The notes under the pieces were generated by a model. That model did no database searches. It saw nothing but the letters and a program-made list of their open reading frames with translations, and was not told where the DNA came from. Of a DNA stretch of 64,000 nucleotides, positions 2,314-49,072 are shown piece after piece; within the stretch, counting starts at the first letter, position 1; every line of letters begins with the position of its first letter. The position numbers were made by a program, and so were the translations under genes. Source of the DNA: Dendrobates tinctorius (lineage: Eukaryota); NCBI RefSeq assembly GCF_039654945.1, contig NW_027361869.1, positions 7,130,001-7,194,000 on the forward strand, given 5' to 3'.

Positions 2314-5300
2314 CCAGTTGGCACTGATCATACAGCTCAGCAGGGAGTAGGTGGTGGCACTGATCATACAGCTCTGCGGGGACAAAGTGGTGGCACTTAT
2401 GTTACAGCTTTGCGGGGACAAGGTGGTGGCACTGATCATACAGCTCTGCAGGGAGGAGTTGGTGGCACTGAACATACAGCTCAGCGTGGACAAAGTGGTG
2501 GCACTGATCTTAAAGCTCTACAAGGATGAGGTGGTGGTACTAATCATACAGCTCTGCAGGGAGGAGGTGGTGGCACTGATCATACAGCTCTGCGGGGACA
2601 AGATGGAGGCACTGATGATAAGGCTCTGCAGGGATGATGTGGTGGCACTGATCGTACAGGTCTGCAGGGATGAGGTGGTAGCACTCATCATACAGCTTTG
2701 CGTGGACAAGGTGGTGGCACTGATCATATAGCTCTGAGGGGATGACGTGGTGGCACTGATCAAATAGCTCTGCAGGGATTAGGTGGTGGCACTGATCATA
2801 CAGCTCTGCAAGGAGTAGGCGGTGGCACTGATTCAACAGCTGTGCGAGGAGTAGGTAGTGGTACTGATCATACAGCTCTGTGCTGACCAACTGGTGGCAC
2901 TGTTCATGCGGTGACAAGGTGGTAGCACTGATTATACAGTTCTGCGGCGACAAGGTGGGGGCACTGATCATACATGTCTGCAGGGAAAAGGTGGTGGCAC
3001 TGAACATACAGATCAGCGCGGACAAGGTGGTGGCACTGATCAGACAGCTCTACAGGGAGGAGGTTGTGGCACTAAACTGGTTTGCAGGGATGAGGTAGTG
3101 GCACTGATTATACAGCTCTGCAGTGAGAGGTGGTGGCACTGAAGATACAGCTGTGCAGGGATGAGGTGGTTGCACTGATCATACAGCTCTGCAGGGAGTA
3201 GGCGGTGGCACTGATCATACAGCTCTGCGGGGACTTGGTGGTGGTACTGATCATACAGCTCTGTGCTGACCAACTGGTGGCACTGATCATACAACTTTGT
3301 GGTGACAAGGTGGTGGCACTGATTATACAGTTCTGCAGTGACAAGGTGGTGACACTGATCATACACCTCTGCGGCGATAAGGTGGTGGTACTGATCATAC
3401 AGCTCTTCAAGGACCAGGTGGTGGCACTGATCATACAGCTTTGCGGGGACAATGTGTTTGCACTGATTATACATCTCTTAAGGTATAAGTTGGAGGCACT
3501 GATCATGCGGTTCTTCAGGGATGAGGTTGTGGCACTGATCATACAGCTCTGCAGGGATGAGGTAGTGGCACAGATCATACAGCTCTTCAGGAATGAGGTA
3601 GTGGCACAGATCATACAGCTCTGCAGAGAGGAGGTGGTGGCACTGATTAAACAGCTTTGCAGGGATGAGGTAGTGGCACAGATCCTACAGACCTGCAGGG
3701 ACAAGGTGGTGGCACTGATCATACAGCTCTGCAGGGACAAGGTGGTGACACTGATCATACACCTCTGCGGCAATAAGGTGGTGGTACTGATCATACAGCT
3801 CTGCAAGGACCAGGTGGTGGCACTAATCAAACAGCTCTGCAGAGACGAGGTGGTGGCACTGATTATACAGCTCTGCAGGGAGGAGATGGTGGCACTGATC
3901 ATACAGCTCTGCAGGAAGTAGGAGGTGGCACTGATTATACAGCTCTGTGTGGATAAGATGGTGGCACTGATCATACAGCTCTGCAGGGAGGAGTTGGTGG
4001 CACAGATCACACAGCTCTGCAGGGATGAGGAGGTGGCACTGATCATGCAGCTCTATAGGTAAGAGGTGATGTCACTGATCATACTGCTCTGCAGGGAAGA
4101 GGTGGTGACACTGATCAAACAGCTTTGCGGGGACAAAGTGGTTGCACTGATTATACATCTCTTAAGGTATAAGTTGGAGGCACTGATCATGCGGTTCCTC
4201 AGGGATGAGGTTGTGGCACTGATCATACAGCTCTTTAGGGATGAGGTAGTGGCACAGATCATACAGCTCTGCAGAGAGGAGGTGGTGGCACTGATTATAC
4301 AGCTTTGCAGGTAGGAGATGGTGGCACTGATCATAAAGCTCTGCAGGGAGTAGGTGGAGGCACTGATCATACAGCTCTGCGGGGAGAATTTGATTGCACT
4401 GATCGTACAGCTCTGCTCGGACAAAGTGGTGGCACTTATGATACAGCTTTGTGGGGACAAGGTTGTGGCACTGATCATACAGCTCTTTAGGGATGAGGTA
4501 GTGGCACAGATCATACAGCTCTTCAGAGAGGAGGTGGTGGCACTGATTATACAGCTTTGCAGGTAGGAGATGGTGGCACTGATCATAAAGCTCTGCAGGG
4601 AGTAGGTGGAGGCACTGATCATACAGCTCTGCGGGGAGAATTTGATTGCACTGATCATACAGCTCTGCGGGGAGAATTTGATTGCACTGATCGTACAGCT
4701 CTGCTCGGACAAAGTGGTGGCACTTATGATACAGCTTTGTGGGGACAAGGTGGTGGCACTGATCATACAGCTCTGCAGTGACTAGGTTGTGGCACTGATC
4801 ATGCAGTTCTGCAGGGATGAGGTGGTGGCACTGATCATACAGCTCTGCAGGGAAAATTTGGTGACACTGATCATACACCTCTGCGTCGACAAGGTGGTGG
4901 TACTGATCATACAGCTGTGCAAGGACCAGGTGGTGGCACTGATCATAAAGCTCTGCAGAGAGGAGGTGGTGGCACTGATTATACAGCTTTGCAGGGAGGA
5001 GATGGTGGCACTGATCATACAGCTCTGTGGGGACAATTTGATGGCACTGATCAAACAGCTCTGCTCAGATAAAGTGGTGGCACTTATGATACAGCTTTGC
5101 GGGGACAAGGTGGTGGCACTGAACATATAGCTCAGCGTGGACAAGGTGGTGGCTCTGATCTTAAAGCTCCACAAGGATGAGGTGTAGGTACTAATCATAC
5201 TGCTCTGCAGGGAGGAGATGGTGGCACTGATCATACAGCTCTGCGGGGACAAGATGGTGGCACTGATCATGAAGATCTGCAGGGATGATGTGGTGGCACT

Positions 5301-8300
5301 GATGATACAGGTCTGCAGAGATGAGGTGGTAGCACTCCTCATACAGCTTTGCAGGGACGAGGTGGTGGCACTGATCATACAGCTTTTCATGGACAAGGTG
5401 GTGGCACTGATCAAACAGCTCTGCAAGGACGAGGTGTTGGCACTGATCATACAGCTTTGCGGGGACAATGTGGTTGCACTGTTTCTACATCTCTTTAGGT
5501 ATAAGTTGGATGCACTGATCAGGGATGATGTTGTGGCACAGATCATACAGCTCTGCAGAGAGGAGGTGGTGGCACTGATTACACAGCTTTGCAAGGAGGA
5601 GATGGTGGCACTGATCATACAGCTCTGCTCGGACAAAGTGGTGGCACTTATGATACAGCTTTGTGGGGACAAGGTGGTGGCACTGATCATACAGCTCTGA
5701 AGTGACGAGGTTGTGGCACTGATCATGCAGTTCTGCAGGGATGAGGTAGTGGCAGCGATCATACAGCTCTGCAGGGATGATTCAGTAGCACAGATCATAC
5801 AGCCCCGCAGGGATGAGGTGGTGGCACTGATCATACAGCTCTGCAGTGAAAAGTTGGTGACACTGATCATACACCTCTGCGGCGACAAGGTGTTGGTACT
5901 GATCATACAGCTCTGCAAGGACCAGGTGGTGGCATTGATCATAAAGCTCTGCAGAGAGGAGGTGGTGGCACTAATTATTCAGCTTTGCAGGGAGCAGATG
6001 GTGGCACTGATCATACAGTTCTGTGGGGACAATTTGATGGCACTGATCATACAGCTATGCTCGGACAAAGTGGTGGCACTTATGATACAGCTTTGCGGGG
6101 ACAAGGTGGTGGCACTGAACATATAGCTCAGCGTGGACAAGGTGGTGGCTCTGATCTTAAAGCTCTACAAGGATGAGGTGGAGGTACTAATCGTACAGCT
6201 CTGCAAGGAGGAGGTTGTGGCACTGAGCAAACAGCTCTGCATGGAAAGGTGGTGGCACTGAACATACAGCTCAGCGTGTACAAGGTGGTGGCACTGAACA
6301 TACAGCTCAGCGTGTACAAGGTGGTGGCACTGATCAGACAGCTCTACAGGGAGGAGGTAGTGGCACTGATCATACAGCTCTGCCGGTATGAGGTGATGGC
6401 ACTGAAGATACAGCTCTGCAGGGATGAGGTGGTTGAACTGATCTTGCAGCTCTGCAGGGAGTAGGTGGTGGCACTGATCTTAAAGCTCTGCGGGGACAAT
6501 TTGATGGCACTGATCATACAGCTCTGCTCACACAAAGTGGTGGCACTTATCATACAGCTTTGTGGGGACAAGGTGGTGGCACTGATCATGCACTTCTGCA
6601 GGGATGAGGTAGCGGCACCGATCATACAGCTCTGCAGGGATGATTCAGTAGCACAGATCATACAGCCTGCAGGGATGAGGTGGTGGCGTGTCACTGATCA
6701 TACAGCTCTGCAGGGAAAAGTTGGTGACACTGATCATACACCTCTGCGGCGACAAGGTGGTGGTACTGATCATACAGCTCTGAAGGGAATAGGTGGTGGC
6801 ACAGATCCTACAGACCTGCAGGGACAAGGTGGTGACACTGATCATACACCTCTGCGGCGACAAGGTGGTGGTACTGATCATACAGCTCTGCAAGGACCAG
6901 GTGGTGGCACTAATCATACAGCACTGCAGAGACGAGGTGGTGGCACTGATTATACAGCTCTGCAGGGATTAGATGGTGGCACTGATCATACAGCTCTGCA
7001 GGCAGTAGGAGGTGGCACTGATTATACAGCTCTGTGTGGATAAGGTGGTGGCACTGATCATACAGCTCTGCAGGGAGGAGTTGGTGGCACTGATCATACA
7101 GCTCTGCAGGTAAGAGGTGGTGTCACTGATCATACAGCTCTGCAGGGACAATGTGGTTGCACTGATTATACATCTCTTTAGGTATAAGTTGGAGGCACTG
7201 ATCATGTGGTTCTGCAGGGATGAGGTTGTGGCACTGATCATACAGCTCTGCTCGGACAAAGTGGTGGCACTGATCATACAACTTTGCGGTGACAAGGTGG
7301 TGGCACTGATTTACAGTTCTGTGGCGACACGGTGGTGGCACTGATCATACAGGTCTGCAGGGAGGAGGTTGTCGCACTGAACATACTGGTTTTCAGGGAT
7401 GAGGTGGTGGCACAGATCATACAGCTCTGCAGAGAGGAGGTGGTGGCACTGATTATACAGCTTTGCAGGGAGGAGATGGTGGCACTGATCATACAGCTCT
7501 GCAGAGAGTAGGTGGTGGCAATGATCATACAGCTCTGCGGGGACAATTTGATGGCACTGATCATACAGCTCTGCTCGGACAAAGTGGTGGCACTTATGAT
7601 ACAGCTTTGTGGGGACAAGATGGTGGCACTGATCATACAGCTCTGCAGTGACGAGGTTGTGGCACTGATCATGCAGTTCTGCTGGGATGAGGTAGTGGCA
7701 CCGATCATACAGCTCTGCAGGGATGTTTCAGTAGCACAGATCATACAGCCCTGCAGGGATGAGGTGGTGGCACTGATCATACAGCTCTGCGGCGACAAGG
7801 TGGTGGTACTGATCATACAGCTCTGCAAGGACCAGGTGGTGGCACTGATCTTAAAGCTCTGCAGGGATGAGGTGGTGGCACTGATCATACAGCTCTGCAG
7901 AGAGGAGGTGGTGGCACTGATCATACACCTCTGCGGGGACAAGGTGGTGACACTGATTATACACGTCTGTGGCGACAAGGTGCTGGTACTGATCATACAG
8001 CTCTGCAGGGAGGAGGTGGTGGCACTGATCATACACCTCTGCAGCAACAATGTGGTGGTACTGATCATACAGCTCTGCAAGGACCAGGTGGTGGCACTGA
8101 TCTTAAAGCTCTGCAGGGATGAGGTGGTGGCACTGATCATACAGCTCTGCAGAGAGGAGGTGGTGGCACTGATTATACAGCTTTGCAGGGAGGATATGGT
8201 AGCATTGATCATTCAGCTCTGTGTGGATAAGATGGTGGCACTGATCATACAGCTCTGCAGGGACAATGTGGTTGCACTGATTATACATCTCTTTAGGGAT

Positions 8301-12164: not shown

Positions 12165-15100
12165 TATTATTATTATTATTTTTATTATTTATTGTTATAG
12201 CGCCATTTATTCCATGGCGCTTTACATGTGAGGAGGGGTATACATAAAAACAAGTACAATAATCTTAAACAATACAAGTCATAACTGGTACAGGAGGAGA
12301 GAGGACCCTGCCCGCGAGGGCTCACAATCTTCAAGGGATGGGTGATAATACAGTAGGCGAGGGTAGAGCTGGTCGTGCAGCGGTTTGGTCGATCGGTGGT
12401 TACTGCAGGTTATAGGCTTGTCGGAAGAGGTGGGTCTTCAGGCTCTTTTTGAAGGTTTCGATGGTAGGTGAGAGTCTGATATGTTGTGGTAGAGAGTTCC
12501 AGAGTAGGGGTGATGCGCGAGAGAAATCTTGTATGCGATTGTGGGAAGAGGAGATAAGAGGGGAGTAAAGAAGGAGATCTTGTGAGGATCGGAGGTTGCG
12601 TGCAGGAAAGTACCGGGAGACGAGGTCACAGATGTATGGAGGAGACAGGTTGTGGACTGCTTTGTATGTCATGGTTAGGGTTTTGTAATGGAGTCTCTGG
12701 GCAATTGGGAGCCAGTGAAGGGATTGACAGAGGGGAGAAGCTGGGGAATAGCGGGGGGACAGGTGGATTAGTCGGGCAGCAGAGTTTAGAATAGATTGGA
12801 GGGGTGTGAGAGTGTTTGAGGGGAGGCCACAGAGCATGAGGTTGCAGTAGTCAAGGCGAGAGATGATGAGGGCATGGACTAGGGTTTTTGCAGATTCTTG
12901 GGTGAGGAATGAACGGATGCGTGAAATATTTTTGAGTTGAAGTCGGCAGGAAGTGGAAAGGGTTTGGATATGTGGTTTGAAGGAGAGATCAGCGTCAAGG
13001 ATTACTCCGAGGCAGCGAGCGTGTGGGACTGGGGAGAGTGGGCAGTCATTTACTGTAATTGATAGGTTCGTAGGGGGGGTCACGTGAGATGGGGGAAAGA
13101 TGATGAATTCTGTTTTGTCCATGTTGAGTTTCAGATATCTAGTGGAGAAGAAGGATGAAATAGTGGACAGACATTGAGGGATTCTGGTTAGTAGGGAGGT
13201 GATATCTGGTCCAGAGATGTAGATCTGTGTGTCATCAGCATAAAGATGATACTGAAAGCCATGAGATTCTATGAGCTGTCCCAGGCCAAAGGTGTAAATA
13301 GAGAACAGCAGGGGCCCTAGGACTGAACCTTGTGGGACTCCGACAGATAGGGGGCGAGGTGAGGAGGTGGTGTGTGAGTGGGAGACGCTGAATGTCCGGT
13401 CTGTTAGGTATGATGAGATCCAGGAGAGGGCCAAGTCTGTGATGCCGAGGGATGAGAGGGTCTGTAATAATAGGGAATGGTCCACTGTGTCAAAGGCAGC
13501 CGACAGGTCCAGGAGGAGGAGGACAGAGTAGTGTCGCTTGCTCTTGGCAGTTAAGAGGTCATTGGTGACCTTAGTAAGGGCAGTTTCAGTGGAGTGGTGT
13601 GACCGGAAGCCAGATTGTAAGCGGTCGAAGAGGGAGCAAGAAGAGAGATGGGAGGACAGTTCAAGGTAGACGTGTTGTTCCAGTAGCTTGGAGGCGTATG
13701 GGAGAAGTGATATAGGGCGATAGCTAGATACAGAGAATGGGTCAAGAGAGGGCTTTTTGAGGATAGGTGTGATGGAGGCATGTTTAAAGCTTGAGGGGAA
13801 AACACCAGTTGTTAGTGACAGGTTGAAGAGATGGGTTAGGGTTGGGATGAAGACTGTGGTGAGGTTTGGGATGAAGTGGGATGGGATCGGGTCGAGTGCA
13901 CAGGTGGTGAGATGTGATCTTGAGAGTAGAGTGGAGAGTCGATCTTCTGTAATGGTGGAGAAGTTGGTTTTGAAGGTGGAGGGCTGGGAAGTCGGGAGGA
14001 AGGGCTCTGGGGGTTGTTGACCAAAACTGTCCCTGATGTTATCAATTTTCTGCTTGAAAAATGAGGCAAAGTCTTCAGCTGAGATGAGTGGGGAGGGAGG
14101 AGGTGCTGGGGGGCGGAGGAGAGAATTGAAGGTGCTGAATAACTGTTTAGGGTTGTGAGACAGGGAGGATATGAGAGATGAGAAGTAGGTTTGTTTAGCT
14201 GTGGCGAGTGTGGTCTTGAAAGTAGTGAGGGACTGTTTGAATGCGATGAAGTGCTCGTTGGAGTGGGATCTTTTCCATCTGCGCTCAGCAGCCCTGGCAG
14301 CTCGCCTCAGCTCTTTGGTCAGGCTGGTGTGCCAGGGCTGTCTGTTGATTTTGCGAGTTTTGGTATGTGTAAGTGGGGCAGCGGATTCCAAAGCTACAGC
14401 TATTGTGGTGTTATATAGAGCGGCAGCGTCATCCGCATTGTGTAAGGAACTTATATCTGTAAGAGGGAGGAGGGATTCAGAGAATGAGTGTAGGTCAAGG
14501 TGTTTAAGATTCCTGCGAGGGTGTGAAAGTTTGTGGGGTGGGGATTGTAGACATGGAGTGAAGAGGGAAGAGAATGTGAGCAGGTTGTGGTCAGAGAGAG
14601 GAAGAGGTGAGTTAGAGAGGTTAGATAGGGAGCAGAGGCGGGTGAAGATGAGGTCCAGTGTGTGGCCATCTTTGTGGGTGGCTGTAGAAGACCATTGAGT
14701 GAGGCCGAAGGAGGAAGTGAGAGATAGAAGTTTAGTGGCAGCTGAGAGGGAAGTGTCGATGGGGATGTTGAAGTCGCCCATGATGATAGTAGGGATGTCC
14801 GCGGAAAGGAAATGAAGTAACCAGGTGGTGAAGTGGTCAAAGAAGGTGGTGGCTGGCCCTGGGGGGCGGTAGATGACAGCCAGTTGGAGGTTGGAGGGGG
14901 AGTAGATGCGCACAGAGTGCACCTCAAAGGAAGGGAGGGTAACAGAGGGTGGCAGTGGGATTGGGGCGAAGGAGCAGGTATCTGACAGGAGAAAACCAAC
15001 TCCTCCACCATGTTTGCTGCTGGGGCGGGGGGTGTGAGAAAGGTGGAAGCCGCCATACGAAAGTGCAGCAGGAGAGGCTGTGTCAGAAGGAGTGAGCCAG

Positions 15101-15371
15101 GTTTCGGTAATGGCGAGGAAGGAGAGTTTGGTAGTAACAAAAAGATCATGGATGTAGGAAAGCTTGTTGCAGACAGAGCGAGCGTTCCACAGAGCTCCTG
15201 TTAGTGGGACTGGGGAAGCGGGGGCTGGGTGAATGGGTATAAGGTTGGAGAGGTTACGGAAGGTTGTGATAGAGTGTGGATGGGAGGTAGAAATGACTGT
15301 GGGAATGTGGTGAGGAGGACCAGGATTTGGGGAGATATCGCCAGCAGTGAGAAGGAGCAGAGAAAGTGTCA
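12165..15371 (-). mobile_element. L2-clade LINE, 5'-truncated, young
   Basis: Uninterrupted EN-RT frame, 3' stem-loop (AGCGCCAT..ATGGCGCT) and (AAT)n tail. 9-bp TSD CAGTCCCAT at 12156-12164 and 15372-15380. Confidence 0.95.
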
Positions 15372-15372
15372 C
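12400..15372 (-). CDS. L2 ORF2 (2A-like peptide, APE endonuclease, reverse transcriptase); no ATG at the 5' end
   Basis: WNARS, ITETWL, MGDFN, TLDL, SDH endonuclease motifs; [25 protein letters not shown] motifs. Confidence 0.92.
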
Positions 15373-15430
15373 AGTCCCATGTGAGCACGCAGAGATCAGC
15401 GGCGTCAGCTCTTGTGGCGACGGTGTGGGT

Positions 15431-15446
15431 GGCTCTTAGAAGAGCC
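15431..15446 (-). terminator. H2A histone 3' stem-loop, with HDE CAAGAGCTG at about 15406-15414
   Basis: AAA-GGCTCT TCTA AGAGCC-ACCCA on the minus strand. Confidence 0.95.
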
Positions 15447-22499: not shown

Positions 22500-23818
22500 A
22501 CCCACATCTACCTGAGAGGCTACGATTTCCAATTCCTGCATTCTGGTGCCTGTAAGTATACTAGTTGTCACAGCCTGGCATGTGTCTTGCACTTTCCTCC
22601 TTCCATACTGGAGCTGGCACCGCGGACTTGGGGTGATGTGGTTTATTCTCCTTGATCTATAATATACAGCTGCCACGTTCTTGGGGCATACAGTATATCC
22701 GCACTGTGCAGCACAGACATCTCTGCACCACAGTACATACCTCGCTGTGATGTGGTCACTACAGAGCAGAAATCCAAGTTCTGCCGTGAGATGAACGTGA
22801 TTCTGCTACAGGTCTTCCTGATCAGATCAGTGTGTGTGTCAGGAGGCAGCGAATACTCCCGGGGATTGTCGCTGGATAGATGCGCCTCCCCCAAAGGCTC
22901 CTATCAGAGCCGCACACATGTGTTCTGGAGAAGCTACAATTCCTGATATTTGATGACTGCGGTGATGGAGTCTGGTCAGATCCTATTTCTCAGGATTGGT
23001 GTAAATCCAGTGAGGAGCGGTCACATCCTGTACCGGTAACTGCTCCCCCTTGTTAGTGGCGGCTCCCCGGTATGTCCAGCGCCTGCATCTCATCACTACC
23101 ACCCTCCTCATTTACCATCTACATGTGGCCACTGATTGTGACCTCCTGACTGCTCCTAATAACATGGACTGGAGCTACAGCCGGCAGCGGTCTCCTGTGC
23201 TCGGGCTGATGGATGAAGCCGCTCCCTCCCCGCAGCCGGACATTAGCGGCTCGTTCCCCTCATGACGGGGAGGTTTCTGGTGTCTTATCCTATTTATCAG
23301 TAGTCGGAGCCAGAAGAGAGAACAGAGTCCGCACCCCGAATGTACAGCGCCGTCATCCGAGCCCGGCGGACCATAGCGAGGACTGGAGATGAGGCGGCTC
23401 CGGAGCCTGTGTATTTCTGAGTGCGGAGAGCGCCATCCCTCCAGAGGAGAAAAAGTCTCGCATACAAGATAACTGCATAAATGTGGTTGGTGAGATAATG
23501 AGCAGCGGCCACCGTTCTGGGGATTGAGGGGTTAATACAATCTCACTTTACCACATGATCTGCAGGTATAATGGCCGCTTACTCCTGACAGTGATTGGGA
23601 AATGATGTCTCTTCCACAAGCAGAGAACAGTCACTGAAGGGTTAATGATCGAGGGCCGAGAGCACGACTGAGCGGGAGATTCAAATCATCAAACGGTTAT
23701 AAAGCTCCGCCCACAGGAACCGACCATAGAATCATAGAATCATAGAATCATAGAATCGTAGAGTTGGAAGGGACCTCCTGGGCCATCTGGTCCAACCCCC
23801 TGCTCAAAGCAGGATTTG

Positions 23819-26740
23819 CTAAATCATCCCAGTCAGATGTCTGTCCAGCCTCTGTTTGAAGACTTCCATTGAAGGAGAACTCACCACTTCTCGTGGCAGC
23901 CTGTTCCACTCATTGATCACTCTAACTGTCAAAAAGTTTTTTCTAATATCTAATCTGTGTCTCCTCCCATTCAGTTTCATCCCATTGCTTCTAGTCTTTC
24001 CTTGTGCAAATGAGAATAAAGTTGATCCTTCTACAATGTGACAGCCCTTTAGATATTTGTAGACAGCAATTAAGTCTCCTCTCAGTCTTCTCTTTTGCAA
24101 ACTAAACATTCCCAAATCCTGCAACCTTTCCTCATAAGACAGGGTTTGCAGACCGGTCACCATTCTGGTCGCTCTTTTCTGAACTTGCTCCAGTTTGTTG
24201 ATGTCTTTTTTAAAATGTGGTGCCCAAAACTGGACACAATATTCCAGATGAGGTCTGACCAAAGAGGAGTAGAGGGAAATAATGACTTCACGTGATCTAG
24301 ACTGTATGCTTCTGTTAATACATCCTAGAACTGCATTTGCCTTTTTTGCTGCTGCATCACACTGTTGACTCATATTCAGTCTGTGATCTATTAGTATACC
24401 CAAGTCTTTTTCACATGTGCTGTCACTTAGCCCTATTCCTCCCATTCTATATATGCTTTTTTCATTTTTATTGCCCAGATGTAGTACTTTGCATTTCTCC
24501 CTGTGAAAAACCATTCTGTTAGTTACTGCCCACTTCTCCAGTTTATTTAAATCTTTTTGAATCCTCTCTCTCTCTTCTCTAGTATTAGCTATCCCTCCTA
24601 GCTTTGTGTCATCAGCAAATTTAATCAGTTTACCCTCAATTCCTTCATCTAAATCATTGATAAAGATGTTGAACAATACAGGGCCCAGGACAGAGCCCTG
24701 TGGTACCCCACTTGAGACATTCTTCCAACTGGATGTGCAGCCATTTACGACCACTCTTTGGGTCCGATCACTAAGCCAGCTATGAATCCACCTAACAGTT
24801 GCCTTGTCCATTCCATACTTAGTCATTTTTTCAATAAGGATTGTATGAGAGACTTTGTCAAATGCTTTGCTGAAGTCAAGATATACTATATCTACAGCAT
24901 TTCCTTGATCCACCCAATCAGTGATACCGTCATAGAAGGAAATTAAGTTAGTCTGACATGACTTATTAGTTACAAACCCATGCTGACTCTGTTTGATCAC
25001 TTCATTCTTATCCAGGTATTGACTTACATGTTGTTTAATAATTTGTTCAAAGATCTTTCCTGGTATAGAAGTCAGACTCACCGGCCTATAGTTGCCTGGG
25101 TCCACCTTCTTCCCCTTTTTGAAGATAGGAACAACATTTGCTCTTCTCCAGTCTTCTGGCACTTCTCCTGTTCTCCAAGAATTTTCAAAGATTATGGAGA
25201 GTGGTTCAGAAATTTCTTCTGCTATCTCCTTCAGTACTCTGGGGTGTAATTCATCTGGACCTGGAGACTTGAATTCATTTAGGTTAGCTAAGTGTTTCCT
25301 CACTATCTTTCTGTTTATAGATATCCTGGATTCTTCTATTCCCTTAATAGGACAGTGAATAACAGTTGGTGTTACATTTCCTTTCTGAGAGAAAACAGAT
25401 GCAAAATAGGAATTTAAAAGTTCAGCCTTCTCAACATCCTGTCTTACCATTTCATCATTTTCATCCTGTAAAAATCCTATAGCATCTTTGACTTTTCTTT
25501 TACTTTTGACATATCCCCAAAATCCTTTATTATTGCTTTTGACATCTCTTGCAAGCCTCAATTCATTTTCAGCTTTAGCTAATCTGATTTGTGCCCTGCA
25601 GATTCTGCAGACAGCATTATATTCTTCTTTAGATATGCCTCCCTCTTTCCATTTTATAAACATTTTTTTCTTCCTTTTTAGCATGTGCTTAAGTTCTGTG
25701 TTCACCCATCCTGGTTTCCTTAAATGCTTCCTATTCTTCCCTCTTTTCGGAATTGTTAACAACTGTGCTTTGAGAATTTCATTTTTCAAGGTTTCCCATC
25801 CTTCCTGGACATTTTTGTCTTTAAGGATATCCAGCCATTGGATCCCTCCAATTATCTTTCTGAATCCCTTAAAATCTGCCTTTCTGAAATCTAACCTTGA
25901 CGTCTGAGTCTTCACAGGTCTTCCGCCTCTAGTTATCCAAAATTCTAAAATAGCATGGTCGCTACCTCCTAGGGTTCCAGCCACTTTTACCTCCTCAACC
26001 ATTTCCTCCCTGTTTATAAGGATTAGATCCAAGGTAGCAGTTCCCCTTGTTTTCTCCCCTACCTTTTGGAAGATAAAGTTGTCAGCAAGAGAGGATAAGA
26101 ATTTCCTTGACCTGTTAGTTTTGCCTGAGAGAGATTCCCAACAAATGTCTGGATAGTTGAAATCTCCCATGACAACTATGTCATATTTTTTGGAGAACTT
26201 GGCCATTTGATGCATAAAGAGTTCATCCATATCTTCAGCTTGCACAGGCGGCCTGTAGTAAATGCCTACAATGGTGTCCTTTCCATTGTTCTGTCCTTGT
26301 ATTCTTACCCAAACAGTTTCCACAGAACTCCCAGTCTCTGAAGCTTCAATCTCTGTGCAGATATACGCGTTTCTAACATACAATGCAACACCTCCTCCTC
26401 GTTTATCAAGTCTGTTTCTTGCAAATAAGTTGTATCCTTCTAGTCTTGTATTCCAATCATGTGTATCGTCCCACCAAGTTTCAGTGATTCCAATGACATC
26501 ATATTTCTTTTCCTGTGTTAGTAGTTCCAATTCTCCTTGTTTGTTGCCCATGCTTTGTGCATTAGTATAGAAACATTTTAGTTTGTGATTGGTTTCTCTT
26601 TCTCCAATATTTTTATTAATTAGATTCTTTCGTCTTTGTTCTTCCTTTCCACTTCTATTAGCAGAGTTCTCAATAGCATTTGTCAGGTGTATGGCTTTTT
26701 CTGGTCTTTTGCTTCCCTTCCCATGTTGTTCTAGTTTAAA
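23819..26740 (-). CDS. CR1-a ORF2 (endonuclease and RT); first ATG at 26551, frame open back past 26740
   Basis: ITETWW, MGDFN, SDH; [23 protein letters not shown]. Confidence 0.95.
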   Translation of the reverse strand, partial: FKLEQHGKGSKRPEKAIHLTNAIENSANRSGKEEQRRKNLINKNIGERETNHKLKCFYTNAQSMGNKQGELELLTQEKKYDVIGITETWWDDTHDWNTRLEGYNLFARNRLDKRGGGVALYVRNAYICTEIEASETGSSVETVWVRIQGQNNGKDTIVGIYYRPPVQAEDMDELFMHQMAKFSKKYDIVVMGDFNYPDICWESLSGKTNRSRKFLSSLADNFIFQKVGEKTRGTATLDLILINREEMVEEVKVAGTLGGSDHAILEFWITRGGRPVKTQTSRLDFRKADFKGFRKIIGGIQWLDILKDKNVQEGWETLKNEILKAQLLTIPKRGKNRKHLRKPGWVNTELKHMLKRKKKMFIKWKEGGISKEEYNAVCRICRAQIRLAKAENELRLARDVKSNNKGFWGYVKSKRKVKDAIGFLQDENDEMVRQDVEKAELLNSYFASVFSQKGNVTPTVIHCPIKGIEESRISINRKIVRKHLANLNEFKSPGPDELHPRVLKEIAEEISEPLSIIFENSWRTGEVPEDWRRANVVPIFKKGKKVDPGNYRPVSLTSIPGKIFEQIIKQHVSQYLDKNEVIKQSQHGFVTNKSCQTNLISFYDGITDWVDQGNAVDIVYLDFSKAFDKVSHTILIEKMTKYGMDKATVRWIHSWLSDRTQRVVVNGCTSSWKNVSSGVPQGSVLGPVLFNIFINDLDEGIEGKLIKFADDTKLGGIANTREERERIQKDLNKLEKWAVTNRMVFHREKCKVLHLGNKNEKSIYRMGGIGLSDSTCEKDLGILIDHRLNMSQQCDAAAKKANAVLGCINRSIQSRSREVIISLYSSLVRPHLEYCVQFWAPHFKKDINKLEQVQKRATRMVTGLQTLSYEERLQDLGMFSLQKRRLRGDLIAVYKYLKGCHIVEGSTLFSFAQGKTRSNGMKLNGRRHRLDIRKNFLTVRVINEWNRLPREVVSSPSMEVFKQRLDRHLTGMI

Positions 26741-27693
26741 GCTCTCCTTACAAGTGTAGCAAGGCGACTTCCAAATACATGCTTTCCAGTCTTCGTAAGG
26801 TGCACCCCATCTCTAGCAAGTAGTCCATCGTATAAGTAGTTCACTCCGTGATCCAGAAATCCAAATCGTTGCTGACGGCACCATCGACGTAGCCAGTTGT
26901 TCACCTGCAGAATCTTATTCCACCTCCTTGTTCCATGGCCATCCACTGGGAGGATGGAAGAGAAGACCACCTGCGCTCCCAGTTCTTTCACTTTCTTGCC
27001 TAAGTCTTCAAAGTCTCTGCAGATGGTTTCCAGGTCGTTTCTTGCGGTGTCATTTGTCCCCACATGTAGTAGCAGGAATGGGTAGTCATCTGAAGGTCTG
27101 AAGAGTCCTGATATCCTGTCAGACACATCTTTAATTTTTGCACCTGGAAGACAGCACATTTCTCTTGAAGTTATATCCGGTCTGCAGATAGCGGCCTCTG
27201 TTCCTCTCAACAGGGAATCCCCCATGACCACCACTCTCCGTTTCTTCTTCACAACATTTTTCTTTCTCCATCCAGGAGGACTCTGAAGGCGTACAAGGTT
27301 GCTGTTTGTTGGCAAAGTCTTATCCTGATGTATTTCTTCATCGTTTTCCTGCGTGAGAGCCTGGTACTGGTTTCTGAGCAGTATGGGTGCTGACTGCCTC
27401 CTGATCCTCCTGCTTCTCTGGGTCACATGTCTCCATTCCTCTGTTTCTTCAGGTGCACTTCGAATTTCTTCTCTTTCTGTAACATGAAGAGATAATTCTG
27501 CTCTGTCCAAGAACTCTTCACCTTCCTTAATGATCTTCAACGTAGCCAACCTCTCTTCGAGATTTTGCAACTTTTCCTCCAACAGGGACACAAGCTTGCA
27601 TTTGTGGCATGTGAAATTTGGCTTTTCCACTGGTAAGTCTGTGAACATGTAGCAAGAAATGCAGCTCACCAAATGGCTCCTGGCCTCTTCCAT
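26731..27693 (-). CDS. CR1-a ORF1 (Cys zinc finger/leucine zipper and SGNH esterase, 320 aa)
   Basis: CxxC..CxxC, GDSLLRG, HVGTND, DGVHL; ends RALN. Confidence 0.93.
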   Translation of the reverse strand: MEEARSHLVSCISCYMFTDLPVEKPNFTCHKCKLVSLLEEKLQNLEERLATLKIIKEGEEFLDRAELSLHVTEREEIRSAPEETEEWRHVTQRSRRIRRQSAPILLRNQYQALTQENDEEIHQDKTLPTNSNLVRLQSPPGWRKKNVVKKKRRVVVMGDSLLRGTEAAICRPDITSREMCCLPGAKIKDVSDRISGLFRPSDDYPFLLLHVGTNDTARNDLETICRDFEDLGKKVKELGAQVVFSSILPVDGHGTRRWNKILQVNNWLRRWCRQQRFGFLDHGVNYLYDGLLARDGVHLTKTGKHVFGSRLATLVRRALN

Positions 27694-27747
27694 CTTGAGA
27701 TTTCTTAAAAAGATGAGCCAAAATTCGCGCGCCGATAGGCGCCGATA

Positions 27748-28128
27748 GGTTTTCCGATTTCCTCTTTTCAGCTGCAACGGCCAAAACCCAGTGATCGTAG
27801 AGCTCGCGGAGACTCTTCACTTATCCCAGAAGGCACTGGGAATATGCAAATGATCTCCTCAAGACTCTTCCCCTGGTTTTCCGATTTCCTCTTTTCAGCT
27901 GCAACGGCCAAAACCCAGTGATCGTAGAGCTCGCGGAGACTCTTCACTTATCCCAGAAGGCACTGGGAATATGCAAATGATCTCCTCAAGACTCTTCCCC
28001 TGGTTTTCCGATTTCCTCTTTTCAGCTGCAACGGCCAAAACCCAGTGATCGTAGAGCTCGCGGAGACTCTTCACTTATCCCAGAAGGCACTGGGAATATG
28101 CAAATGATCTCCTCAAGACTCTTCCCCT
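27748..28128 (-). repeat. CR1 5'UTR tandem monomers, 3 x 127 bp
   Basis: Identical units starting at 27748, 27875 and 28002. Confidence 0.95.
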
Positions 28129-28559
28129 GGACCAATCGATAGACGTGCTTCCTCCTCCGTTTAACTCCTTATTGCCCTTCTACCTGCTGCTCCTCATGTA
28201 CACGTGTTCTCCCGGCAGCGCTCAGCACATCGGGCTCCTCCTGGTAGAACATGTGCGGATTGTATCATCCGATCTGTGCTAGATGCGGCCTCCTGTGATC
28301 AGTGCGGACCCCACACGGAGACGCCCAGATATAACGTTACCGGGTCTCCGTGTGGCGTCCGCTCCGATCACTGCTGGAAGTGGAGTTGAGACTGATCAGC
28401 CCTGGAGCTGCAGGCAATGTATACACACCCCGTACGGTGCTGCACATCCTCCATACCACCTACTGGGTGGTATACAGCACTACAAAGCCTACGTGTGCTG
28501 TATACTCCCCATCTAGTGCTGCAGACACAAATCCGAGAGCATCTGTTTTATATAAGCCT

Positions 28560-36935: not shown

Positions 36936-39900
36936 CCAGGAGAAGAGTCTTGAGGAGATCATTTGCATAGAATCATAGAATCATAGAGTTGGAAGGGACC
37001 TCCTGGGCCATCTGGTCCAACCCCCTGCTCAAAGCAGGATTCGCTAAATCATCCCAGTTAGATGTCTGTCCAGCCTCTGTTTGAAGACTTCCATTGAAGG
37101 AGAACTCACCACTTCTCGTGGCAGCCTGTTCCACTCATTGATCACTCTAACTGTCAAAAAGTTTTTTCTAATATCTAATCTGTGTCTCCTCCCATTCAGC
37201 TTCATCCCATTGCTTCTAGTCTTTCCTTGTGCAAATGAGAATAAAGTTGATCCTTCTACATTGTGACAGCCCTTTAGATATTTGTAGACAGCTATTAAGT
37301 CTCCTCTCAGTCTTCTCTTTTGCAAACTAAACATTCCCAAATCCTGCAACCTTTCCTCATAAGACAGGGTTTGCAGACCGGTCACCATTCTGGTCGCTCT
37401 TTTCTGAACTTGCTCCAGTTTGTTGATGTCTTTTTTAAAATGTGGTGCCCAAAATTGGACACAATATTCCAGATGAGGTCTGACCAAAGAGGAGTAGAGG
37501 GAAATAATTACTTCACGTGATCTAGACTGTATGCTTCTGTTAATACATCCTAGAATTGCATTTGCCTTTTTTGCTGCTGCATCACACTGTTGACTCATAT
37601 TCAGTCTGTGATCTATTAGTATACCCAAGTCTTTTTCACATGTGCTGTCACTTAGCCCTATTCCTCCCATTCTATATATGCTTTTTTCATTTTTATTGCC
37701 CAGATGTAGTACTTTGCATTTCTCCCTGTTAAAAACTTATTATTATTTTTGGCTCATCTTTCATCGTTTTTAAGAGATCTCAACATGGAAGAGGCCAGGA
37801 GCCATTTGGTGAGCTGCATTTCTTGCTACATGTTCACAGACTTACCAGTGGAAAAGCCAAATTTCACATGCCACAAATGCAAGCTTGTATCCCTGTTGGA
37901 GGAAAAGTTTGGGAATTCCCATATTCCCAGTGCCTTCTGGGATAAGTGAAGAGTCTCCGCGAGCTCTACGATCACTGGGTTTTGGCCGTTGCAGCTGAAA
38001 AGAGGAAATCGGAAAACCAGTGGAAGAGTCTTGAGGAGATCATTTGCATATTCCCAGTGCCTTCTGGGATAAGTGAAGAGTCTCTACGATCACTGGGTTT
38101 TGGCCGTTGCAGCTGAAAAGAGGAAATCGGAAAACCAGGGGAAGAGTCTTGAGGAGATCATTTGCATATTCCCAGTGCCTTCTGGGATAAGTGAAGAGTC
38201 TCCGCGAGCTCTACGATCACTGGGTTTTGGCCGTTGCAGCTGAAAAGAGGAAATCGGAAAACCAGGGGAAGAGTCTTGAGGAGATCATTTGCATATTCCC
38301 AGTGCCTTCTGGGATAAGTGAAGAGTCTCCGCGAGCTCTACGATCACTGGGTTTTGGCCGTTGCAGCTGAAAAGAGGAAATCGGAAAACCAGGGGAAGAG
38401 TCTTGAGGAGATCATTTGCATATTCCCAGTGCCTTCTGGGATAAGTGAAGAGTCTCCGCGAGCTCTACGATCACTGGGTTTTGGCCGTTGCAGCTGAAAA
38501 GAGGAAATCGGAAAACCAGGGGAAGAGTCTTGAGGAGATCATTTGCATATTCCCAGTGCCTTCTGGGATAAGTGAAGAGTCTCCGCGAGCTCTACGATCA
38601 CTGGGTTTTGGCCGTTGCAGCTGAAAAGAGGAAATCGGAAAACCAGGGGAAGAGTCTTGAGGAGATCACTTGCATATTCCCAGTGCCTTCTGGGATAAGT
38701 GAAGAGTCTCCGCGAGCTCTACGATCACTGGGTTTTGGCCGTTGCAGCTGAAAAGAGGAAATCGGAAAAACCGCGCGCCTATCGGCGCGCAAATTTTGGC
38801 TCATCTTTCATCGTTTTTAAGAGATCTCAACATGGAAGAGGCCAGGAGCCATTTGGTGAGCTGCATTTCTTGCTACATGTTCACAGACTTACCAGTGGAA
38901 AAGCCAAATTTCACATGCCACAAATGCAAGCTTGTGTCCCTGTTGGAGGAAAAGTTGCAAAATCTCGAAGAGAGGTTGAAGATCATTAAGGAAGGTGAAG
39001 AGTTCTTGGACAGAGCAGAATTATCTCTTCATGTTACAGAAAGAGAAGAAATTCGAAGTGCACCTGAAGAAACCAGTACCAGGCTCTCACGCAGGAAAAC
39101 GATGAAGAAATACATCAGGATAAGACTTTGCCAACAAACAGCAACCTTGTACGCCCTCAGAGTCCTCCTGGATGGAGAAAGAAAAATGTTGTGAAGAAGA
39201 AACGGAGAGTGGTGGTCATGGGGGATTCCCTGCTGAGAGGAACAGAGGCCGCTATCTGCAGACCGGATATAACTACAAGAGAAATGTGCTGTCTTCCAGG
39301 TGCAAAAATTAAAGATGTGTCTGACAGGATATCAGGACTCTTCAGACCTACAGATGACTACCCATTCCTGCTACTACATGTGGGGACAAATGACACCGCA
39401 AGAAACGACCTGGAAACATCTGCAGAGACTTTGAAGACTTAGGCAAGAAAGTGAAAGAACTGGGAGCGCAGGTGGTCTTCTCTTCCATCCTCCCAGTGGA
39501 TGGCCATGGAACAAGGAGGTGGAATAAGATTCTGCAGGTGAACAACTGGCTACGTCGATGGTGCCGTCAGCAACGATTTGGATTTCTGGATCACGGAGTG
39601 AACTACTTATACGATGGACTACTTGCTAGAGATGGGGTGCACCTTACGAAGACTGGAAAGCATGTATTTGGAAGTCGCCTTGCTACACTTGTAAGGAGAG
39701 CTTTAAACTAGAACAACATGGGAAGGGAAGCAAAAGACCAGAAAAAGCCATACACCTGACAAATGCTATTGAGAACTCTGCTATTAGAAGTGGAAAGGAA
39801 GAACAAAGACGAAAGAATCTAATTAATAAAAATATTGGAGAAAGAGAAACCAATCACAAACTAAAATGTTTCTATACTAATGCACAAAGCATGGGCAACA

Positions 39901-42704
39901 AACAAGGAGAATTGGAACTACTAACACAGGAAAAGAAATATGATGTCATTGGAATCACTGAAACTTGGTGGGACGATACACATGATTGGAATACAAGACT
40001 AGAAGGATACAACTTATTTGCAAGAAACAGACTTGATAAACGAGGAGGAGGTGTTGCATTGTATGTTAGAAACGCGTATATCTGCACAGAGATTGAAGCT
40101 TCAGAGACTGGGAGATCTGTGGAAACTGTTTGGGTAAGAATACAAGGACAGAACAATGGAAAGGACACCATTGTAGGCATTTACTACAGGCCGCCTGTGC
40201 AAGCTGAAGATATGGATGAACTCTTTATGCATCAAATGGCCAAGTTCTCCAAAAAATATGACATAGTTGTCATGGGAGATTTCAACTATCCAGACATTTG
40301 TTGGGAATCTCTCTCAGGCAAAACTAACAGGTCAAGGAAATTCTTATCCTCTCTTGCTGACAACTTTATCTTCCAAAAGGTAGGGGAGAAAACAAGGGGA
40401 ACTGCTACCTTGGATCTAATCCTTATAAACAGGGAGGAAATGGTTGAGGAGGTAAAAGTGGCTGGAACCCTAGGAGGTAGCGACCATGCTATTTTAGAAT
40501 TTTGGATAACTAGAGGCGGAAGACCTGTGAAGACTCAGACGTCAAGGTTAGATTTCAGAAAGGCAGATTTTAAGGGATTCAGAAAGATAATTGGAGGGAT
40601 CCAATGGCTGGATATCCTTAAAGACAAAAATGTCCAGGAAGGATAGGAAATCTTGAAAAATGAAATTCTCAAAGCACAGTTGTTAACAATTCCGAAAAGA
40701 GGGAAGAATAGGAAGCATTTAAGGAAACCAGGATGGGTGAACACAGAACTAAAGCACATGCTAAAAAGGAAGAAAAAAATGTTTATAAAATGGAAAGAGG
40801 GAGGCATATCTAAAGAAGAATATAATGCTGTCTGCAGAATCTGCAGGGCACAAATCAGATTAGCTAAAGCTAAAAATGAATTGAGGCTTGCAAGAGATGT
40901 CAAAAGCAATAATAAAGGATTTTGGGGATATGTCAAAAGTAAAAGAAAAGTCAAAGATGCTATAGGATTTTTACAGGATGAAAATGATGAAATGGTAAGA
41001 CAGGATGTTGAGAAGGCTGAACTTTTAAATTCCTATTTTGCATCTGTTTTCTCTCAGAAAGGAAATGTAACACCAACTGTTATTCACTGTCCTATTAAGG
41101 GAATAGAAGAATCCAGGATATCTATAAACAGAAAGATAGTGAGGAAACACTTAGCTAACCTAAATGAATTCAAGTCTCCAGGTCCAGATGAATTACACCC
41201 CAGAGTACTGAAGGAGATAGCAGATGAAATTTCTGAACCACTCTCCATAATCTTTGAAAATTCTTGGAGAACAGGAGAAGTGCCAGAAGACTGGAGAAGA
41301 GCAAATGTTGTTCCTATCTTCAAAAAGGGGAAGAAGGTGGACCCAGGCAACTATAGGCCGGTGAGTCTGACTTCTATACCAGGAAAGATCTTTGAACAAA
41401 TTATTAAACAACATGTAAGTCAATACCTGGATAAGAATGAAGTGATCAAACAGAGTCAGCATGGGTTTGTAACTAATAAGTCATGTCAGACTAACTTAAT
41501 TTCCTTCTATGACGGTATCACTGATTGGGTGGATCAAGGAAATGCTGTAGATATAGTATATCTTGACTTCAGCAAAGCATTTGACAAAGTCTCTCATACA
41601 ATCCTTATTGAAAAAATGACTAAGTATGGAATGGACAAGGCAACTGTTAGGTGGATTCATAGCTGGCTTAGTGATCGGACCCAAAGAGTGGTCGTAAATG
41701 GCTGCACATCCAGTTGGAAGAATGTCTCAAGTGGGGTACCACAGGGCTCTGTCCTCTGCCCTGTATTGTTCAACATCTTTATCAACGATTTAGATGAAGG
41801 AATTGAGGGTAAACTGATTAAATTTGCTGATGACACAAAGCTAGGAGGGATAGCTAATACTAGAGAAGAGAGAGAGAGGATTCAAAAAGATTTAAATAAA
41901 CTGGAGAAGTGGGCAGTAACTAACAGAATGGTTTTTAACAGGGAGAAATGCAAAGTACTACATCTGGGCAATAAAAATGAAAAAAGCATATATAGAATGG
42001 GAGGAATAGGGCTAAGTGACAGCACATGTGAAAAAGACTTGGGTATACTAATAGATCACAGACTGAATATGAGTCAACAGTGTGATGCAGCAGCAAAAAA
42101 GGCAAATGCAGTTCTAGGATGTATTAACAGAAGCATACAGTCTAGATCACGTGAAGTCATTATTTCCCTCTACTCCTCTTTGGTCAGACCTCATCTGGAA
42201 TATTGTGTCCAGTTTTGGGCACCACATTTTAAAAAAGACATCAACAAACTGGAGCAAGTTCAGAAAAGAGCGACCAGAATGGTGACCGGTCTGCAAACCC
42301 TGTCTTATGAGGAAAGGTTGCAGGATTTGGGAATGTTTAGTTTGCAAAAGAGAAGACTGAGAGGAGACTTAATTGCTGTCTACAAATATCTAAAGGGCTG
42401 TCACATTGTAGAAGGATCAACTTTATTCTCATTTGCACAAGGAAAGACTAGAAGCAATGGGATGAAACTGAATGGGAGGAGACAAAGATTAGATATTAGA
42501 AAAAACTTTTTGACAGTTAGAGTGATCAATGAGTGGAACAGGCTGCCACGAGAAGTGGTGAGTTCTCCTTCAATGGAAGTCTTCAAACAGAGGCTGGACA
42601 GACATCTGACTGGGATGATTTAGCGAATCCTGCTTTGAGCAGGGGGTTGGACCAGATGGCCCAGGAGGTCCCTTCCAACTCTACGATTCTATGATTCTAT
42701 GATT
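36936..42704 (+). mobile_element. Full-length but defective CR1 (CR1-b) with about 7 monomers
   Basis: Monomers 36936-38769 (first interrupted); ORF1 from 38832 with deletions and frameshifts; ORF2 with TGG>TAG at 40644-40646; ATTCTATG tail. Confidence 0.93.
36966..37919 (-). mobile_element. 5'-inverted truncated CR1 nested in the first monomer of CR1-b
   Basis: Minus-strand 3' end with tail (36966-37736), filler, plus-strand ORF1-start piece (about 37746-37909); the monomer resumes at 37920. Confidence 0.85.
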
Positions 42705-42838
42705 GCATCACTCTATGATTTGTTACAAAGGGAAGCATTGATGTAACGAGCCATATATGTTGTATTGGTGAATATTTTTCTTTCTATTCACAGGGGTGAC
42801 AGCGGGACCCAGTATGTAACTGGTGGAACCAGTATGAG

Positions 42839-48318: not shown

Positions 48319-49072
48319 GTAGTTTTTCTTAGGGTGGTCTCACACGTCCAGATAATTCCGGTACCGGAAAAAACGTTATCGGAGCTGGCCGTGTGTCCAT
48401 GTGGATATGTGGTACCTCCATGTGGCAACCGTGTGCCACATCAGGACCACACAGGAGGCCACCGGGGAAGAAGTGCTACAGTAAGCGCTGTTCCCCAGCG
48501 GCTGGTGCTGAACGCGGCTGTCATTGTTCTCTCCTGCTCTGCTGGCAACAGCGAGCAGGAGAGAAGAATGAATGAAAACCCTGACGTTGGGCCCCCCTCT
48601 GTTTGTAAACCAAGCCGGCAAAACTCACAGCGGGGGGCTGCTATTCTGAGGCTTGTAAGAGGCCATTGATCTTGGCCCCCCCAGCATAAAAACAGCAGCC
48701 CACAGCTGCCCAGAAAAGGCGCATTTATTAGATGCTCCTCTTCTGGAGCTTTGTCAGGTTCTTCCCACTTGCTCTGTAGTGGTGGCAAATGGGGTCATAA
48801 GGGGTTAATATCACCTTTCTATTGTAAGGTGACATTAAGCCCGGATTAGTAATGGAGAGGTGTCAATAAGACACCTCTCCATTACTAATCCTATTTGTAA
48901 GAAAAGGGTTAAATAAACACACACAATTAGAGCAAAGTATTTTAATGAAAAAATACACTACACACATTGTTTAAAGCTTTATTATACTCCTAATTCCATA
49001 TCGACGCCATCGTTCTGTAAAAAAGTGTAAAATAATAAACTAACAATATCCCATACCTGTCCCACAATTAGT

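Follow-up and report, generated by a model that had tools for sequence, protein, structure and literature searches.

How does a long interspersed nuclear element (LINE) make the protein of its second open reading frame (ORF)? The question is a long-standing one, with experimental answers for only a few elements: L1 terminates and reinitiates, SART1 couples stop and start through UAAUG and some others use 2A peptides. It is raised here by a CR1 LINE present in a stretch of 64,000 nucleotides from the frog Dendrobates tinctorius (NCBI RefSeq assembly GCF_039654945.1, contig NW_027361869.1, positions 7,130,001 to 7,194,000 of the forward strand; this whole stretch is referred to below as the window, and all coordinates are positions within it). 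In the intact copy, CR1-a, ORF1 ends on a slippery heptamer, U_UUA_AAC, and the −1 frame across that heptamer runs without a stop codon into ORF2. A prediction made from the letters of the window alone (the original prediction) held that ORF2 is produced as an ORF1–ORF2 fusion. Comparison of the junction from sharks to birds leads us to regard it as very probable that the CR1 ORF2 protein (ORF2p) is made by −1 programmed frameshifting as such a fusion with the ORF1 protein (ORF1p).

The junction in the frog element

CR1-a is a young, full-length element on the minus strand (about 23725..28130) that comprises a 5′ untranslated region (UTR) with tandem repeats, ORF1, a linker, ORF2 and a 3′ UTR. 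Its second copy, CR1-b (about 37920–42717, plus strand), is 99.4% identical to it across 3651 nt but has a broken ORF1, as well as an ORF2 with an in-frame stop at 40644–40646. ORF1 of CR1-a (26731..27693, minus strand) begins at an ATG at 27693 and encodes 320 amino acids followed by TAG, the protein ending in RRALN. ORF2 (23819..26551, minus strand) encodes 910 amino acids before its stop when read from its first ATG, and 973 when read in the −1 frame from the heptamer; the stop-to-stop frame spans 23822–26812.

Canonical −1 signals carry a heptamer of the form X_XXY_YYZ whose phase is that of the upstream ORF's zero frame. In CR1-a the heptamer U_UUA_AAC (26734..26740, minus strand) stands in that phase as GCU UUA AAC and the TAG stop codon of ORF1 (26731..26733, minus strand) lies directly 3′ of it. 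The same junction, again in the correct phase, is found in CR1-b, where the heptamer and TAG occupy 39702..39711 on the plus strand. The ORF1 end (GCT TTA AAC TAG) and the heptamer coordinates given for both copies by the original prediction proved correct in every case when re-read from the sequence. The 10-mer TTTAAACTAG is found in the window at these two junctions only, against a chance expectation of 0.15. UUUAAAC had also been named as a coronavirus site, and it is identical to the U_UUA_AAC of infectious bronchitis virus (IBV) (PMC5009743).

Across the CR1-a junction the −1 frame reads TTT AAA CTA GAA... and, in agreement with the earlier claim, continues for 63 codons to the first ORF2 ATG at 26551 with neither a stop codon nor an AUG (the linker, 26552..26740, minus strand). 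Stop codons in the linker number 0, 4 and 6 in the −1, 0 and +1 frames, respectively, and the probability of a stop-free −1 frame on shuffling is 0.027 for this single copy. The nearest upstream −1-frame stop (26813..26815, minus strand) is 24 codons before the heptamer and marks the upper limit of the shift window in CR1-a. The −1 frame is thus open from 26812, which in this copy alone leaves a window of about 80 nt.

An ATG in the zero frame lies 6 nt past the ORF1 stop (26722–26724, minus strand) and opens a mini-ORF of 13 codons (MGREAKDQKKPYT). Contigs of a related frog species differ from CR1-a at 26724 and 26747, with the heptamer unchanged, and read GTG in place of this ATG. Because of this difference we rejected the ATG as a part of the signal, and the mini-ORF itself is, judging by the comparison, probably nonfunctional.

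Conservation of the heptamer beyond the needs of the protein

The lineage DNA used for comparison consisted of copies from other species together with 80 mostly avian metagenome copies, retrieved by means of patterns far from the ORF1 C-terminus. For the codon test, ten ORF1 lineages with a protein identity of at most 66% were compared. In all ten, the terminal leucine is encoded by TTA, the terminal asparagine by AAC and the third base of the preceding codon is T. At 12 other conserved leucine columns, pairwise codon identity in the same lineages is only 0.08–0.33, and TTA accounts for 9.3% of the leucine codons in these ten genes. The scrambling of codons at the other conserved leucine columns shows that synonymous sites are saturated, but the heptamer is nonetheless fixed. 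A further property of canonical −1 signals is that the shift site is conserved at synonymous positions, beyond what the protein requires. Synonymous conservation of TTTAAAC had been proposed as a check on the original prediction, and TTA and AAC are indeed invariant from shark to bird.

The form N_UUA_AAC with an abutting stop codon is seen in a shark (ACT TTA AAC TAG), a teleost (TGT TTA AAC TAG), frogs, turtles, lizards, a snake, an alligator and four bird subfamilies. The heptamer keeps one and the same zero-frame phase in 15/15 lineages and a stop codon (TAG, TGA or TAA) abuts it in every one. The teleost element (from Paramormyrops kingsleyae) belongs to the CR1 lineage rather than to L2, its ORF2 sharing 41% identity with the frog CR1 ORF2 and 27% with that of the L2 element in the window. 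TTTAAAC is retained in 60 of the 68 copies with a recognisable ORF1 end, and two copies (L001 and L091) have the variant G_UUA_AAC. When junctions were anchored on the DGxHL motif, with neither the C-terminal peptide nor the heptamer being used, all copies ending in LN were found to read TTTAAAC or GTTAAAC.

At the protein level, most of the listed ORF1 homologues end in LN. Almost all of those from frogs, turtles, lizards, snakes, crocodilians and birds have RRALN as their last residues, and the distant homologues of the coelacanth, mormyrid fish, sharks and rays end in x-L-N, with A, T, F, L, S, C, Y, H or G at x. Every residue seen at x has an NNU codon available to it.

A divergent element from the turtle Gopherus flavomarginatus (L007:3424-5850) has an ORF1 with 29% identity to the frog ORF1 that ends TTT TTA AAC TAG and is followed by a run of six G residues. 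The element is interrupted after ORF1 by unrelated sequence, with an opposite-strand ORF of 608 amino acids (4024–5850) that, read by eye, looks like a long terminal repeat (LTR)-retrotransposon polymerase. We rejected this copy as a datum on phase: the heptamer is present but the interrupted element is without ORF2.

Phase, linker and the position of the probable slip

In 14/15 lineages, and in 31/33 individual copies, the endonuclease encoded by ORF2 lies in the −1 phase relative to ORF1. Variation in the Leu and Asn codons or in the ORF phase among relatives would have counted against the original prediction; the codons do not vary and the phase is kept in all lineages but one, and the prediction was not refuted by this test. 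The linker between the heptamer and the endonuclease is 105–279 nt in length and its sequence is not conserved. Its −1 frame is nonetheless free of stop codons in 15/15 lineages, whereas the other two frames have 1–8 stops (3–8 except in the alligator copy discussed below). In 10/15 lineages the −1-frame linker has no AUG either. The CR1 junction therefore has another property of canonical −1 signals, an open −1-frame downstream ORF that encodes a needed product and lacks a start codon of its own.

The point at which the −1 frame opens varies between lineages. In the alligator, Gopherus and others the nearest upstream −1-frame stop is 5–8 codons before the heptamer, and in the shark, the teleost and the main bird family it is just 1–2 codons before the UUU. 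Because of these last stops the frame change must take place within the last three to four codons of ORF1, that is, at the heptamer, if one site serves all lineages.

The endonuclease fold begins before the first AUG of ORF2

The peptide LKCFYTNAQS, which the original prediction had placed upstream of the first ATG as the first motif of the apurinic/apyrimidinic (AP) endonuclease, is encoded at 26552..26581 (minus strand), immediately before the ATG at 26551, and forms the first β-strand in the fold of the AP endonuclease, including its conserved asparagine. Three kinds of evidence agree that the fold starts ahead of the AUG. In the Pfam Exo_endo_phos alignment the first methionine falls at profile position 13, leaving about 12 positions upstream of it. 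An AlphaFold model of the endonuclease built with nine natural sequences (mean predicted local distance difference test score, pLDDT, 87.5) has KLKCFYTN as strand 1, entirely before the first methionine. The model superposes over its full length on the human L1 endonuclease with template modelling (TM) scores of 0.73–0.76 (1vyb, 2v0s, 8sp7), and places the onset of the fold about 11 residues ahead of the methionine. A sequence search of the PDB with the endonuclease gave no match; these matches came from the structure-based fold search.

In turtle, snake and alligator, the methionine after the first strand is replaced by leucine, with the result that there is no AUG at this position. Because the first endonuclease strand precedes the methionine and the methionine is a leucine in several lineages, a start of ORF2 at the first AUG is, on the modelled fold, excluded. 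For annotation this means that CR1 ORF2 models drawn from the first AUG lose strand 1 of the endonuclease and the conserved asparagine.

A G-tract in fixed register downstream of the heptamer

The linker is variable but its first nucleotides hold a feature that was not part of the original prediction. In CR1-a a G-tract, GGGAAGGGAAG, occupies 26712..26722 (minus strand), positions +12 to +22 after the heptamer, and is a candidate frameshift stimulator. Tracts of this GGGGGAAGGGGA type are present in 15 lineages in a fixed, ungapped register from +11 to +22, a region that is 87–100% purine against a background G frequency of 0.28. G is found at +12, +13 and +14 in 15, 14 and 15 of the 15 lineages, respectively, and at +18 and +19 in 93%. 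The tract begins at +11 or +12 in 10/15 lineages and takes in +12 to +14 in every one of the 15.

In the −1 frame, positions +12 to +14 are a glycine codon, the third base of which is invariant. The glycine codon that comes next (+18 to +20) has a variable third base, and conserved glycine codons within ORF1 vary freely. Because the third base is fixed at the one codon and varies at the others, this pattern points to a constraint on the G-tract at the level of RNA. The position of the tract is that of the linear or small stimulators found 11–14 nt 3′ of the shift site in frameshifting that depends on a trans-acting factor; spacers of 11–14 nt and linear motifs have been tied to such factors (PMC5009743).

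Two further ideas about the tract were tried. A pairing partner was rejected as a common feature, since RNAduplex within 160 nt on either side gave a significant result in Chelydra only (z −4). A G-quadruplex was likewise rejected as the universal stimulator: one is predicted in 9/16 lineages only, and in neither of the frogs, nor in Chelydra, Gopherus, Zootoca, the snake or one bird family. The predictions are compatible with a G-quadruplex that may act in some lineages. Natural G-quadruplex stimulators of frameshifting were not known as of 2016 (PMC5009743).

A model for the expression of ORF2

In the mechanism that we propose, the last two sense codons of ORF1 would be the shift site. Ribosomes on GCU UUA AAC would slip back by one base, tRNA-Leu re-pairing with UUU and tRNA-Asn with AAA, and so would miss the adjacent stop codon and read CUA GAA... 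through the variable linker into the endonuclease. The product would be an ORF1p–linker–ORF2p fusion with the predicted junction ...RRALN-LEQHGK, whilst most ribosomes would terminate without slipping and so provide the excess of ORF1p over ORF2p required by a LINE. A LINE needs little ORF2p, so a low efficiency of frameshifting would be enough. The stimulator would most likely be the conserved G-tract 11–22 nt downstream, possibly together with the adjacent stop. The original prediction had suggested that this stop might supply the pause, and its adjacency is itself invariant. Were the slip to occur while AAC occupies the P site and the stop codon the A site, the G-tract would lie at the usual distance from the P site. 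U_UUA_AAC is amongst the most slip-prone heptamers on mammalian ribosomes (PMC5009743).

If this model is correct, it explains how ORF2p is produced without a start codon, sets the ratio of ORF1p to ORF2p and ties ORF2p physically to ORF1p, which would give cis preference. A G-tract that acts without structure could also be a new type of cellular frameshift stimulator. We would go further only tentatively, to a composite signal more than 400 million years old that consists of N_UUA_AAC, an obligatory adjacent stop codon, an 8-nt spacer and an unpaired GGGGGAAGGGGA-type G-tract that stimulates the shift by binding a trans-acting protein or by forming a G-quadruplex. The binder could in that case be a host G-tract protein or the CR1 ORF1p itself, the latter giving feedback control of ORF2p, and a G-quadruplex would form only in those lineages with four G-runs. 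Were this composite signal real, a G-tract or G-quadruplex would for the first time be seen as a natural stimulator and a protein would for the first time be seen to stimulate −1 frameshifting outside RNA viruses, and this in the transposon family that dominates in birds, reptiles and many amphibians.

Weighing the evidence

Several observations weigh against frameshifting. In one alligator copy (L006:3583-3800, Alligator mississippiensis) the junction reads GCT TTA AAC TAA and the endonuclease is in the zero frame past the stop codon. The −1 frame of this copy is nonetheless open for 54 codons and its linker holds runs of seven G and six C residues; these runs make it plausible that an old copy has suffered a 1-nt insertion or deletion in one of them, although an assembly error or a readthrough variant are also possible causes. 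In a teleost copy (L089:3420-3440) an AUG stands directly before UUU AAA, so that the −1 frame reads AUG UUU AAA CUA G, and ORF2 initiation could take place at this AUG too, 8 nt before the ORF1 stop. The bird copies come mostly from one metagenome sample and are related by descent.

The remaining points concern structure and the nature of the data. Canonical −1 signals have a stem-loop or pseudoknot 5–9 nt 3′ of the heptamer, and none was found by ViennaRNA folding, which is blind to pseudoknots and to long-range pairs. No stem-loop was found after the frog junction (141 nt folded), the sequence being less stable than shuffled versions of itself (z +1.0 to +1.4), and no common or significant hairpin was found in 14 lineages when 60 or 120 nt were folded (minimum free energy z −2.1 to +2.0). 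The original prediction had seen no obvious downstream pseudoknot, and these foldings, with no structure shared between lineages, are in keeping with that. A scan of the junction against Rfam gave no relevant family. Nor was a consistent partner for the G-tract found within 160 nt on either side when RNAduplex energies were compared with shuffles. It is only a guess that the sequencing runs containing the junction are RNA; they are no proof of transcription, and their contigs may miss rare transcript variants. Finally, the support for a fusion is comparative (codons, phase, linker and the missing AUG).

Could ORF2p be made as a separate protein instead? In termination-coupled reinitiation, or initiation at a non-AUG codon, the 40S subunit would be held at the ORF1 stop and would restart in the −1 frame in the style of SART1 or L1, tethered for example by pairing of the G-tract with 18S rRNA in the manner of the calicivirus TURBS (termination upstream ribosomal binding site). 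The GGGA-like cores of the G-tract, their fixed distance from the stop and the invariant position of the stop itself would all suit such a mechanism, which would likewise draw on an open linker. UAAUG in SART1 is a precedent for stop–start coupling, and the study of 2A peptides in LINEs calls the mechanism of ORF2 translation 'not clear' (PMC3708506). Lineages with a TGA stop moreover have a −1-frame CUG that overlaps it, and the teleost has the AUG noted above. An AUG or near-cognate codon near the stop is not conserved, however: lineages with TAG read GGC UUU AAA CUA at this point, and a restart AUG in the −1 frame is absent in 14/15 lineages, the teleost being the sole exception. Known TURBS elements lie upstream of the restart site, whereas the CR1 G-tract with its GGGA cores lies downstream, where folding did not find a structure. 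A restart also leaves unexplained why U_UUA_AAC should be fixed at synonymous sites in slippery phase, and we consider it unlikely.

The heptamer might also have been kept for some other cause, such as a C-terminal ALN combined with codon bias or a DNA or RNA motif outside translation, with ORF2 being translated from its first AUG or not expressed at all. The C-terminal RRALN peptide is itself strongly conserved, which would fit, but codons at other conserved residues of the same genes are scrambled, and the third base before the leucine codon stays U whilst the residue that it helps to encode varies (A, T, F, L, S, C, Y, H, G). The endonuclease fold already includes the first AUG, which is missing in several lineages, and in several lineages the −1 frame opens exactly at the heptamer, all of which makes this explanation very improbable. 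Correction of the frame in the RNA itself, whether through transcriptional slippage, through editing or through a small splice that would bring ORF2 into frame with ORF1 or downstream of it, has nothing positive to recommend it and enters the discussion only for want of a start codon in ORF2. No conserved homopolymer of at least six residues is present in the overlap (the A5 run in the linker of the frog lacks conservation), in four runs the contigs span the junction with no insertion or deletion (contigs do drop rare variants) and the AG|GT-like sequence seen after the stop in the turtle and bird is absent in the frog and lizard. We give this possibility the least credence of all. Taken together, the comparisons strongly support a CR1 junction at which frameshifting would be driven by the heptamer in the manner of Gag-Pol, unusual in its invariant adjacent stop, in its conserved G-tract and in that no stem-loop was found.

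Relation to known systems

The closest parallel in sequence is with the ORF1a/1b junction of the nidoviruses, where the same heptamers are used: IBV has U_UUA_AAC, and equine arteritis virus has the G_UUA_AAC that is seen in two CR1 copies (PMC5009743). In both settings a downstream ORF that contains a polymerase is reached, or in CR1 would be reached, by slipping into the −1 frame close to where the upstream ORF ends (PMC5009743). The viruses differ, however, in having an H-type pseudoknot a few nucleotides downstream, whereas no conserved structure was found in CR1. CR1 is moreover a cellular LINE rather than an RNA virus, its zero-frame stop abuts the heptamer and its G-tract lies 11 nt downstream.

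In terms of its predicted products, CR1 resembles the retroviruses and LTR elements, in which excess amounts of a structural or RNA-binding first protein are accompanied by a minority fusion with reverse transcriptase, obtained through a heptamer that closes the first ORF. In Rous sarcoma virus the gag stop codon, too, lies directly after the heptamer. CR1 is, however, a non-LTR element and has no protease for cleaving the fusion, its ORF1p is of esterase type and not a Gag, and a stem-loop or pseudoknot was not found. In many animal LTR elements pol lies in the −1 frame and the heptamers are classical (PMC5009743).

Other LINEs face the same problem of producing a small amount of protein from a second ORF on a single mRNA, and solve it by the UAAUG termination–reinitiation of SART1, unconventional reinitiation in human L1 or 2A-like peptides in some CR1, L2 and Rex1 elements (PMC3708506, PMC5009743). 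These solutions yield a separate ORF2p and employ an AUG or a 2A peptide, in contrast to the CR1 junction described here with its overlap in the −1 phase, conserved heptamer and no conserved AUG. In the spacing of its candidate stimulator, 11–12 nt after the shift site, and in the apparently linear nature of that RNA, CR1 recalls the C-rich motif of arterivirus nsp2TF and the 2A-bound stem-loop of the cardioviruses. The likeness is in spacing only: the CR1 motif is G-rich rather than C-rich and a factor that binds it is hypothetical.

We found no description of frameshifting, an ORF overlap or a slippery site in CR1 in the literature that can be searched as full text; Haas 1997, Kajikawa 1997 and Kapitonov and Jurka 2003 fall outside that scope, and an earlier mention is possible. 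CR1 frameshifting is not mentioned in the recoding review (PMC5009743), the paper on 2A in LINEs (PMC3708506), the survey of ORF1 in the Jockey superfamily (PMC4120745), the analysis of amniote CR1 (PMC4316615) or the survey of the CR1 group (PMC13343379).

The element and its neighbours in the window

The two ORFs of CR1-a identify it as a CR1 LINE with an esterase-type ORF1 and an ORF2 that encodes an AP endonuclease and a reverse transcriptase. In the 973-amino acid numbering, ORF2 has Pfam domains Exo_endo_phos at 65–262 and RVT_1 at 543–759, both of which pass their cut-offs. ORF1, which is 99% identical to D. tinctorius protein P0001, has an N-terminal zinc-finger/coiled-coil region followed by an SGNH/GDSL esterase domain. 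Its own Pfam matches are weak and fall short of the curated cut-offs (Lipase_GDSL_2, 31.4 bits where 32.9 are required; OSK, 22.9 where 27 are), and its assignment to the esterase type is based mainly on the PF13472 marks and SGNH esterase source names that its homologues carry.

The frog ORF1 is 69% identical to a protein of the tegu lizard Salvator merianae and 67% identical to a metagenome protein, but only 64–70% identical to proteins of another dendrobatid frog and about 50% identical to turtle proteins, a pattern that could reflect either horizontal transfer or an old shared family. A further homologue, P0039, is a CR1 ORF1 ending in RRALN but is filed as Klebsiella pneumoniae (on a 2.9-kb contig); it is most likely vertebrate DNA that contaminates a bacterial assembly.

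In both CR1 copies the 5′ region is made up of tandem units of about 127 bp (27748–28130 on the minus strand in CR1-a and 37920–38769 on the plus strand in CR1-b), with more units in CR1-b. Repeat arrays in the 5′ UTR are mentioned for some elements of the CR1 group in a 2026 survey (PMC13343379). A third piece of CR1, corresponding to the 3′ part of ORF2, is found at 49031–50284 on the plus strand and has 50–64% identity to teleost and turtle ORF2 over about 300 amino acids. The window also contains the ORF2 of an L2-type LINE, a 1011-codon open frame at 12403–15435 (minus strand) with 24–27% identity to CR1 ORF2s.

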